A DNA stretch of 64,000 bases, taken from the NCBI GenBank assembly GCA_047495785.1, contig JBLDXI010000024.1, forward strand, positions 4,340,001 through 4,404,000, given 5' to 3'. Position numbers and translations under genes: made by a program. Of this stretch, positions 53,301 through 56,300 are shown in pieces (positions within the stretch are counted from its first letter, which is position 1; each line of letters begins with the position of its first letter). Under the pieces are notes generated by a model. That model ran no database searches. It was not told where the DNA came from and was given only the letters and a program-made list of their open reading frames with translations. The DNA is from Lepidodermella squamata (lineage: Eukaryota > Animalia > Gastrotricha).

Positions 53301-56300
53301 ACAATGGACGACCTACCAGCTGAGGCTTGTGATCTTCAGCGATTTTACGGCTACCATCTCAAGGTTGGATTCGCTAAATCTCGAGAGGAGAAACGAAAGC
53401 GTAGAGATACAACCAGTGATTCATCGAGCGATGATTTTGAACTCGATCCAAGTTCGACGGAATCGGCCGTGACCTTCAAATCGTCTTACTTCGGAGATTT
53501 CGGGGCTGACCTCGTGATCTCGCCTAATACTATCGAATTCTCTGACATTTTTGCCAATTTCGCAAGCTTGATCTCGGACAACGCGTTCGTTCTAGCTTTT
53601 CAAGCTGCAGCTGTTGTATTTTTCATCATTGGCGTCGTAGTACTGTGGAGGTTCGACCGTATGGATATCAAAGACTGGGCCTTCATGCCCTTGAAGAGCA
53701 ACAAACCCTATGAAAGCCATAAATACCTGATCTCGGTCGACCATTTCGGCGTGAAGAACTATCACTTAAAGCCTGTAGTTCTCTTCAGAGCTTATGGCGA
53801 CATAAGCGACTCCAATTGGCGGGTACTGGAAGACTGCGAACGAGATTCGAATTTTGATGGAAAACGCCCAGCAAACTTCATGTTCACAACAATCTTACCC
53901 CTTGGTCATATCGAGGCTATCGACATTCGACTTCACAGCCGATTCCGTGCTCCAGTTGGCCAGAAACCTCTTCAACTGCACATAGACAAAGTGGTCATTG
54001 TCGACATAGAAAAGGGGCTGAAATTTGTTTTCCTTGCGAAATCTGAGTTGAAAAGTGGCGATGCCAAAAATGTGGAACTAGCAACGGAAGATGAGCTAAA
54101 AGGCTTCCGATATTTAGTTAGTGCTCACTCACGAGTCGGCATTTTCAGCTCTCATCCATGGCTTTCTGTTACGAAACGACCCTTGCCTAGCAATTGGACA
54201 CGATGTGAGAGATTGGCTTGCGTGGTCAGTGCTCTGTTTATGGCCATGCTAGTCAATGCGATGTTCTACGGCAAAGAGAATCAATCTCCGCGAGTTGGTG
54301 TTAAAATCGGAGGGTTCTTCCGCTTGTCTTGGTTCACAGTCTATACGAGCTTCATCGGGTGTGTCATCGTCATTCCTCCCACGGCAATTATGTCCTTCAT
54401 TTTCAAACGGATTCGACGTCGATCGGCTGAGAATAGTCACTACACGACGATATTCAATGTAGCAGTCGGAGGGCAACGGGACGAAGATGAAGAGGAGAAG
54501 AAGAACAAGCCATTCCAACTTCCGTACCATTGCGTAATCGCTGCTTGGATTCGTAAGTTCGAAGCTATTCGTTAATACCTACTTTAATTAATTATGACAG
54601 TCGTGGCTGCCTGTGTTGGCATCTCAGCATTCTTCATTGTGATGTACAGCCTTTCCTGGGGCAAAGAGAAATCGCTGCAGTGGCTCAGTGGAATGGTCAT
54701 GAGCATCGTTCAAGACATAGTCTTAATCCAGACCGTTAAAGTAGCGCTGACTTCAGTTTTCAGCTCCACTCTCTTGTCTCTACCGGACGATGGCCTCAAT
54801 GTTGGTAAACTGGCTTATTCCAAGAACAGCTCGAACCACAAATCAGAGCTGTTCAAAAGAATGCGGAATATCATTGCGGGAATTTTCCATCACATTATCT
54901 ATGTCATAGCTTTCTCCATTGTTATTTCTGCGACTCAGAACAAGCTTTCGTATCAACAAGTCGGAGATTTGAAACCATTGATTGAAATGAATGACGTGCG
55001 TCAAATGGATGTGGTCAATGATTACAGCCAAATCTATTCTTGGCTCAATAACAAGCTTTTGCCGAATTTCTTCACGGCCAACCAGCTTAGCAAGGGCTTG
55101 AAATTCACTGCCAGCAACATCTATCGGGTTGACAATCACGATGTCGTTGTACTCGGGCCAATTCGGCTCCGCCAACAGCGAGTTAGAGACTGTAAGTTTT
55201 TATTATCACAAGTAATTTCCATTAATTAATTATTTACATCTTCGCAGTTCCTTGCCCCTTAGAAATATCACTAGTACCGCAATACGTTGCTAAATACACG
55301 AATCGACTTGTTGATAATGTAACAAAATGCCAAGCCTCTTACGTCAGTCCATTGGGAATAGGCGATACCTCTGAAAATCGGCAGTTTGCGAACTTCAACT
55401 GGACTTATCGCCAGAATATAACAATCTGGGATCCAGAAAATATCTCAACCGAGCAGGCCCCATGGATCTATCGGAGTGACAGCGGAATTCCCTACTCGGG
55501 CTGGCAGGCAACCTACACCAGCGGTGGATATTACGTCGACCTGCCCGTGAATCTTGCGAAAGCTCAAGCTTTTGTTGCTGAGCTTCAGTCAAGGAGATGG
55601 CTGGACAACGCAACTTCAGTTCTGTTCGTTGACATGGTCCTGTTCAATGCTCAGGTCAACCTGTTCATCGCTGTGAAAGTTGTGTTCGAAGCTTTGAGTG
55701 CTGGAGGCATGACGTATCATGCGAGAATGTATCCTCTTCAGCTGTACCAATACATCGGGGCTAGCTCAATCTTTATTTTCGCAATTCAAGCGATTTGGAT
55801 TTTGCTAGTTCTGTCTCATCTCGTCAAGATTATCATGAAGATGAAGAAAATTGGCATAAACACGTTCAGAAAAGATTGGTGGAACCTACTGGACCTATGC
55901 CACATTCTTATTGCCCTTGCCATCGTAGGGCTATTCATAGCTCGAATTGTCGTGGTGATGAAAGCTGTTACCCGACTTCAAACTGACAGGACTTCTTTCG
56001 TGAACTTCGATCTTCTAGTTAACTGGGAAGCTCTGATGGCTAACCTGTACGGGATCACATTCTTCATGACCATGTTGCTGTTTTTCCGCCATCTCACTTT
56101 CAACAAGTACTGGTGCATGTTCTTAGGCACACTTTCCAAGGGCAAGAATGACGTTCTCTCATTCATTTTTGTCTTCACATTGATTACAATGCTCTTCGCG
56201 CAACTTGGCTACCTGAGTATGAATACAACTCGTGAAGAGTTCCAAAGTTTCAGTGAATCAATTCTGACCCTTATTCAGAATATTATTGGCGTAAGCGGCT

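Follow-up and report, generated by a model that had tools for sequence, protein, structure and literature searches.

A conserved furin-type motif in the GAIN-like domain of polycystin-1-like receptor genes lacking the autoproteolytic triad in the gastrotrich Lepidodermella squamata

Polycystin-1 (PC1) cuts itself between the Leu and the Thr of an H-L-T triad (aa 3048), which yields a fragment beginning with TAFGASLFVPPSHVR (PMC6992733). Whether GAIN-domain cleavage as such is required for the function of polycystin-1 and the adhesion class of G protein-coupled receptors (GPCRs), or whether the fold and the tethered stalk alone are enough, is debated. The window analyzed here, a stretch of 64,000 nucleotides (nt) from the gastrotrich Lepidodermella squamata (contig JBLDXI010000024.1, positions 4,340,001 to 4,404,000), contains three tandem PC1-like receptor genes, referred to as copies B, C, and D, that lack this triad and carry a furin-type motif, R-x-K/R-R, a short distance upstream of its position. 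The question that these genes raise is whether their GAIN domain can still cleave itself and, if not, whether another protease cuts it. Comparison of sequences and structural models indicates that the known route to self-cleavage is closed, and that a furin-like convertase acting from outside probably cuts at the motif, which would give a non-covalent two-chain receptor. Positions are those of the window, with the strand given as (+) or (-), unless a contig is named.

The cleavage site and the upstream basic motif

A phmmer search of all PDB chains with the open reading frame (ORF) of copy D aligned residues 343–654 of the query to residues 33–336 of polycystin-1 (6a70_B; E = 6.6e-12), and this alignment runs from the stalk, TAFGASLFVPPSHVRF, through the first transmembrane helix (TM1), the PLAT region, and the helices beyond it. 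At the cleavage site, one canonical PKD1-like paralog of this genome has the sequence CLCTHL/TSFGSDFAQPPNAIDF (the slash marks the site here and below). Because the PC1 alignment and the canonical paralog both align there, Y-F-G can be placed at the H-L-T site; it occupies these positions in copies B, C, and D, in which the two cysteine positions of the GPS end are taken by F and S. All four GPS cysteines are gone, and the His at P2, the Leu at P1, and the Thr/Ser at P1' are absent. Two distant paralogs, L031 and L032, have Q-I-G or R-L-G as triad variants. For autoproteolysis at a GPS, P1' must supply the nucleophile (Thr/Ser, or Cys) and P2 a His that acts as the base. Since P1' is an invariant Gly, which leaves no nucleophile, it is safe to infer from these residues that the GAIN domain of this family cannot self-cleave by the known mechanism.

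Searches with Pfam gave no GPS, REJ, or PLAT match in the exon ORFs of copies B, C, and D. Genome wide, 16 matches to PF01825 were obtained, none of which falls at a locus of the window's polycystin family; 12 of the 16 stand directly before TM1 of other PKD1-like genes. An upstream segment of the window family, ...AC-ELQR-C-YGYHL..., contains H-L and was considered as a possible true remnant of the GPS; it was rejected because its second Cys varies among paralogs, which have F, S, A, V, or T there, and because the PC1 site aligns to Y-F/G.

The motif lies on the N-terminal side of this site in each copy. In copy D, R-K-R-R (P4 to P1) is encoded at 53394–53405 (+), with D-T next, and corresponds to the only segment with very low confidence in the domain model described below. 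Known furin sites of receptor precursors match R-K-R-R followed by D or S. The degenerate second half of the GPS, AVTFKSSYF (53466–53492, +), is predicted to form a β-strand (residues 464–468 of the larger model described below), and is followed by the stalk-like last GAIN strand with its linker (53493–53540, +), which phmmer pairs with the PC1 stalk, and by TM1 (53586–53648, +), a stretch of 21 hydrophobic residues that aligns to TM1 of PC1 and is helical in the model. Copy B has R-G-R-R at 10888–10899 (-), then AVTFKSSYF/GDFGADLLISPSTIEF at 10744–10818 (-), of which 10744–10791 is the stalk, and TM1 at 10636–10698 (-). Copy C has R-R-R-R at 34156–34167 (-), EVAFKSSYF/GDFGAELLISPNTIQF at 34015–34089 (-) with the stalk at 34015–34062, and TM1 at 33901–33969 (-). 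In all three, the motif precedes ...FKSSYF/GDFGA(D/E)L..SP.TI.F by about 30 residues, and TM1 follows.

An earlier, sequence-only reading of this DNA had pointed out these motifs, aligned the degenerate GPS end with the PKD1 family, and proposed that a PC1-like stalk strand is retained. The motif scan returned exactly the same positions and peptides in copies B, C, and D, and the alignment to PC1 given here is a computed one. The retained stalk is borne out by the phmmer pairing and by the conservation described next, and in the linear sequence the position of the motif loop does correspond approximately to that expected for the GPS's first half.

A six-frame search of the 121-Mb assembly for loci related to the window ORF gave about 35 loci that are related along the whole ORF (35–77% identity) and about a dozen distant PKD1-like genes (26–30% identity). 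Most of the former lie in one array on the window's contig, at about 4.17–4.64 Mb, and a second cluster is found at 2.36–2.60 Mb. Among 31 aligned paralogs, the Arg at P4 (R436) and the Arg at P1 (R439) are invariant, with zero entropy, whereas the columns flanking the motif have entropies of 1.3–2.7 bits and several indels, so that both the sequence and the length of the flanks vary. P2 is K or R in 31/31, and seven residues are seen at P3 (K, R, L, Y, G, S, and T). The invariant arginines are encoded by AGG, AGA, CGG, CGT, and CGA at P4 and by CGC, CGT, AGA, CGA, and AGG at P1. Most of the compared pairs of paralogs show saturated synonymous divergence (dS), and the ratio of nonsynonymous to synonymous divergence (dN/dS) is 0.12–0.14 where it can be estimated. 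Recent duplication cannot explain the invariance of the motif, given the saturated dS, the five codons per Arg, and the variable flanks; as judged from these patterns, the invariance is due to selection and not to recent copying. The pattern itself, in which P4 and P1 admit only Arg, P2 is basic, and P3 can vary, is the signature expected of recognition by a furin-like convertase. Further downstream, the glycine at P1' (G472) and F474, G475, P482, and I485 of the stalk are invariant in the same 31 paralogs. In ten canonical PKD1-like genes inspected in the same genome, R-x-K/R-R is absent from the 110 residues upstream.

The same data bear on the notion that these genes are decaying pseudogenes, or that the motif arose by chance and was passed on by a single recent ancestor. 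In-frame stops in a few paralogs (L017 and L019) speak for it. It is, however, refuted by the long open frames of some 30 paralogs, by the low dN/dS at saturated synonymous sites, by the five codons used for each Arg, and by the presence of the motif in metagenomic relatives at 35–47% identity, and we regard it as extremely improbable. The two interrupted loci lie at G000:C24:4272495-4274003 (L017) and C46:1592146-1594347 (L019); in L019, an insertion also splits the stalk (YFGDFGAD...LLISPNTIQF). Both may be pseudogenes or may have extra introns.

A more serious alternative is that the GAIN-like domain remains permanently uncleaved and is purely structural, the motif serving as an electrostatic latch with the acidic stretch behind it, as a contact for glycosaminoglycans or a ligand, or as a site for some other protease. 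The motif is indeed followed by a conserved stretch that is acidic and rich in Ser, and by a Phe that is nearly invariant, and uncleaved domains of this kind are well documented, for example in ADGRB2, the GAIN domain of which is intact in all constructs (bioRxiv 10.1101/2023.03.12.532270). On the other hand, P4 and P1 are always Arg and never Lys, P2 is K or R, and P3 is unconstrained, which is not how a charge patch would be conserved. Taking these points together with those raised below, we consider a permanently uncleaved domain rather unlikely.

Predicted fold, motif position, and gene architecture

The frame of copy B (540 residues) was modeled with AlphaFold using the alignment of 31 sequences. 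The model has a predicted local distance difference test (pLDDT) score of 85–92 over most of residues 150–430, followed by a loop (430–449) with a score below 50 and by short strands at 453–455, 464–468, and 472–479 that lead into the transmembrane helix. A domain-only model (370 residues), for which the metagenomic relatives P0001–P0004 were added to the alignment, has a pLDDT of 83.6 and a predicted template modeling score (pTM) of 0.81, and its sole segment with pLDDT below 50, residues 316–333, contains the motif (R321–R324).

The domain model was aligned, with no prefilter, to 48,161 representative PDB chains. The top eight matches are all GAIN domains (Z = 10.9–7.8; 156–180 residues aligned), namely those of CD97 (Z = 10.9 and 9.5), CELSR1 (10.2), Gpr126 (9.4), GPR110 (8.5), BAI3 (7.9), GPR97 (7.9), and latrophilin-3 (7.8), and the alignments span the domain from the last helix to the last strand. 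The larger copy B model gave the same ranking, with ZU5 and Nup98 folds lower. Foldseek searches of the PDB with both models yielded weak E-values and low TM-scores, with high probability for GAIN rows only (1.00 for the GAIN domain of BAI3); the VIA-align searches were clearer. In the ESM Atlas, the nearest shape is a PKD1L2 cluster (PLAT in 98%, GPS in 95%; TM-score 0.52 over 354 residues), and the next two are mostly rotifer clusters with REJ/GPS and PLAT/GPS, the top three having TM-scores of 0.50–0.52. A language-model feature search agrees with this result.

As modeled, the juxtamembrane domain keeps the GAIN fold on which the sequence-only reading depended, with a helical subdomain A, a β-sandwich B before TM1, and a last strand that runs to the membrane. 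The motif is placed by the models in the one disordered loop of the domain; it lies N-terminal to TM1 in a protein with Fibrinogen-C and EGF domains, in an exposed segment of the extracellular/luminal region. The disorder of this loop in both AlphaFold models makes a fixed structural contact less likely.

The strands past the motif loop are modeled with pLDDT values of 86–91 for the blocks covering residues 341–360 and are among the most conserved columns of the alignment. They are relevant to a further possibility, namely that the convertase cuts for release, so that the Fibrinogen-C/EGF ectodomain is shed as a soluble lectin-like factor or simply taken off as a pro-region and the membrane part acts alone, without a lasting two-chain receptor. 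Secreted recognition proteins of invertebrates often contain Fibrinogen-C domains, and just two short strands lie past the cut to hold the fragments together, both of which would suit shedding. The confident placement of these strands in the sandwich and their high conservation are nevertheless what would be expected if they had to remain docked, and the stalk is conserved like that of PC1; we thus find shedding improbable.

Domain-model residues ~150–310 match unrelated β-sandwiches and represent an insertion relative to the GAIN domains of adhesion GPCRs. This inserted sandwich (residues ~265–425 of the model of L009:2362-3981:-; window ~10930–11410, -) resembles GOLD, pilin, and jelly-roll folds weakly (Z ~5–6.8). 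It is absent from the solved GAIN domains of adhesion GPCRs, and an invariant cysteine pair, QC-x6-C-D, stands just before it.

In each copy, long ORFs follow one another with very little sequence between them, and searches were run on single ORFs or exons, unspliced. Pfam matches follow one order: one or two Fibrinogen_C domains, EGF repeats, the GAIN-bearing ORF, Polycystin_dom, and PKD_channel, with PF20519 (Polycystin_dom) and PF08016 (PKD_channel) matching ORFs farther downstream in copies B, C, and D alike. In the phmmer search, the part that follows TM1 aligns to the PLAT region of PC1, though Pfam gave no PLAT or REJ match. The copies are polycystin-1-like (PKD1-like, 11-transmembrane type) receptor genes of a spiralian animal. 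Copy D spans 48582–57276 (+), with Fibrinogen_C, EGF repeats, the GAIN-like domain, TM1, the PLAT-like region, Polycystin_dom, and PKD_channel in separate ORFs; copy B (7672–16132, -) has the same architecture, as has copy C (30793–40075, -), which has two Fibrinogen_C ORFs.

In copy D, the helical part of the GAIN-like domain (subdomain A) is encoded in the preceding exon (52140–52403, +), and the β-sandwich part, including the inserted sandwich of ~160 residues, in the exon that also encodes TM1 and the PLAT-like region (52467–53522, +). Between the helical part and the rest lies an intron of ~54 nt (GTAAGA...CAAG, ~52404–52457). In copy B, the whole GAIN-like domain is in one open frame (10762–12141, -), which is the sequence modeled, and the homologous helices and sandwich are continuous at the corresponding place (11830–11900, -); intron presence thus varies among paralogs. 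The frame of copy C stops 128 residues past the stalk and resumes 54 nt later (33625–33678, -), a gap that probably represents a further short intron and not a break. Between copies B and C, there is a gene for a perforin-like MACPF protein (26672–29497, +; MACPF E = 5.4e-11), the first ORF of which has a borderline Sushi repeat (E = 6.8e-4, just under the cut-off).

Age of the triad loss and its association with the motif

A full HMMER scan of 1.84 billion representatives gave 413 proteins at E ≤ 1e-10, and those with names are PKD1-like. The match extends to the ectodomain in five of the 413, and four of these five, P0001–P0004, reach the stalk. All four come from metagenome assemblies, P0001 being an intronless ORF of 1632 residues, and they carry RRKRR, RKRR, RKKR, and RRRR at -30 to -33 from Y-M-G, Q-F-G, or S-F-G. 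With these relatives, at 35–47% identity, R-x-K/R-R is conserved in 31/31 paralogs and in P0001–P0004, a range well beyond the three copies from which the sequence-only reading started.

The triad could be read in 116 representatives, 80 of which have H-[LM]-[TS] and 36 of which do not. A tree built from the sequence that follows the triad places 30 noncanonical rows on one side of a branch with a Shimodaira–Hasegawa-like approximate likelihood ratio (SH-aLRT) support of 96, and the window's family together with P0001–P0003 forms a subclade with 100% support within this x-F-G side. The tree is unrooted (midpoint root, quick search), and the terms “clade” and “nested” as used here assume a root among the canonical sequences. 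Named members of the x-F-G clade are from Lingula (a brachiopod), scallops and abalone (molluscs), Owenia (an annelid), and the flatworms Macrostomum and Schmidtea, the last with PKD1L-2; the Lingula member is named “PKD1-like 2”, and those of scallop and abalone are named polycystin-1-like. On this tree, the loss of H-L-T and of the cysteines is old, common to the spiralian x-F-G clade, and predates the window's family. The sequence-only reading, which had described the GPS as lost in the three copies, was right about the absent residues, and the loss itself dates back further than these copies. What is specific to the family, shared with P0001–P0004, is the fixed site at about -30 and the Fibrinogen-C/EGF ectodomain. 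The analysis, together with papers that were found not to take up the GPS status of this clade, brings out a large spiralian PKD1-like clade without H-L-T to which this mechanosensory planarian protein belongs.

To compare the two states across the set, the motif was scored as R-x-K/R-R within 110 residues before the stalk. It is present in 13/36 non-H-L-T representatives and in 0/80 canonical ones (Fisher p = 4e-8); when the window's own family is left out, the counts are 9/32 and 0/80 (p = 5e-6), and these tests overstate the independence of the sequences, so that the p values are descriptive. Motif density is 3.9 per kb in the upstream region and 0.6 per kb elsewhere in the same proteins, which is about six-fold. 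Other x-F-G relatives carry the motif in some cases only, and its distance differs there (-28 to -91). Scallop proteins with CRCP...GN.F make up another non-H-L-T group, distinct from the first, which falls among canonical sequences on the tree; here the motif is present in 3/3. The roughly six-fold enrichment in non-H-L-T relatives, together with the count of 0/80 in canonical ones, is a further point against a permanently uncleaved, structural domain. In view of the small number of independent events on the tree (given below), the association between triad loss and convertase motif is suggestive.

Five proteins without R-x-K/R-R (P0006, P0007, P0010, P0013, and P0024) have RRLL or RRRLL at -55/-56, and the four of them whose names were checked are from Lingula. 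RRLL/RRRLL at that site is absent from the canonical H-L-T proteins of the set; we take it to resemble the S1P/SKI-1 type of site. It is conceivable, and we put this forward tentatively, that lineages of spiralian polycystin-1-like receptors that lost GAIN self-cleavage repeatedly gained convertase sites in loops of the same domain, of the furin type at several positions and possibly, in the Lingula group, of the S1P-type RRLL. If true, selection would maintain the two-chain state of the receptor and not the autoproteolytic chemistry, and this family, in which 30 or more paralogs share one fixed site, would be a natural experiment on the need for cleavage in polycystin and adhesion-GPCR signaling.

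Proposed processing and comparison with known systems

The genome has ten matches to P_proprotein, the P-domain of convertases, and at least one locus, L049, combines Peptidase_S8 with P_proprotein; judged by these domains, it encodes kexin/furin-type convertases. One of the P-domain ORFs, L051 (G000:C24:4669553-4669813; PF01483, E = 2e-26), lies on the same contig as the polycystin array, ~30 kb past its last paralog.

In the processing that we propose, a furin-like convertase would act in the secretory pathway and cut behind the second Arg. The N-terminal fragment would comprise the Fibrinogen-C and EGF domains and most of the GAIN domain, and the C-terminal fragment an acidic, Ser-rich linker of ~25 residues, the last two strands, TM1, and the channel-like body. 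As these two strands would remain part of the β-sandwich, they would hold the fragments together non-covalently. A two-chain receptor would thereby be restored, the ectodomain of which could be pulled off or shifted by a ligand or by force, exposing the conserved stalk. This would amount to a replacement, in evolution, of cis-cleavage by trans-cleavage, as the pattern suggests. It would also offer an experimental handle, as inhibitors or R-to-A changes could abolish cleavage and leave the stalk untouched.

Several observations weigh against this proposal. A cut ~33 residues ahead of the stalk would give a fragment that starts with an acidic linker and an extra strand, unlike the stalk start of PC1, so that losing the N-terminal fragment would not be enough to expose the stalk. 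The structural matches are of moderate strength (Z ~8–11, with ~160–180 of 370 residues aligned), although this, like the weak Foldseek scores, is accounted for by the inserted sandwich of ~160 residues. A single possible RNA run, with 9% of the words, gave only short, low-depth, partly palindromic contigs, no splice junction, and no usable sign of expression; the other run probably represents the source DNA. On the tree, the GPS state changes five times and the motif state eight times, which leaves only four to five independent pairs and a sign test without power. Finally, about 19 of the 30 x-F-G representatives lack R-x-K/R-R. Among them is planarian PKD1L-2, in which the motif is absent upstream of the stalk; pkd1L-2 is found in ciliated rheosensory (mechanosensory) neurons, and its knock-down lowers mechanosensory behavior (PMC11448475). 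Since most x-F-G relatives lack the motif and planarian PKD1L-2 is nonetheless functional, the protease site is not required for function in this clade, and these relatives favor the alternative of an uncleaved GAIN domain. They also qualify the switch from autoproteolysis to a convertase that the sequence-only reading had proposed: the self-cleavage residues are lost and the motif is conserved, but the change was not an obligatory single step. Weighing these points, we still favor cleavage by a furin-like convertase.

What emerges is a non-autoproteolytic GAIN domain with an internal convertase motif, maintained by selection, in a polycystin-1-like receptor family. In the literature library searched, no report was found of a convertase site inside the GAIN domain of a PKD1-like protein, or of the x-F-G clade as such, which by itself is not proof of novelty. 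The closest known system is human PC1, which has the same domain order (GAIN, stalk, TM1, PLAT, further transmembrane helices, polycystin domain, and channel-like domain) and a stalk that aligns residue for residue (FGA.L..PP/SP...F, in which the slash separates alternatives). It differs in cutting itself at H-L/T, where the window family has Y-F-G, no GPS cysteines, and a furin-type motif ~33 residues upstream. The spiralian x-F-G clade, within which the window family is nested, shares the degenerate GPS end (FKSNFFG.F) and differs in that the furin-type motif is found in some members only and is not fixed at -30 to -33.

In Notch, furin makes the S1 cut in a disordered loop of a juxtamembrane domain, and the two chains are held together non-covalently until force separates them. 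The fold of that region (the LNR/HD domain) is unrelated to the one described here and the receptor is of another type; the likeness concerns the mechanism alone. Within the polycystin complex, the partner protein fibrocystin (PKHD1) undergoes proprotein-convertase cleavage at aa 3616 and retains its ectodomain (PMC6992733); it differs in being single-pass and in having no GAIN domain. Among adhesion GPCRs, ADGRB2/BAI2 has an intact, uncleaved GAIN domain and is partly cut by furin between the CUB and TSP domains (bioRxiv 10.1101/2023.03.12.532270), and ADGRG6/GPR126 has, besides its GPS, a furin site in the SEA domain (PMC9259995). The furin sites of BAI2 and GPR126 thus lie outside the GAIN domain, whereas the motif of the window family lies inside it, just before the last two strands.

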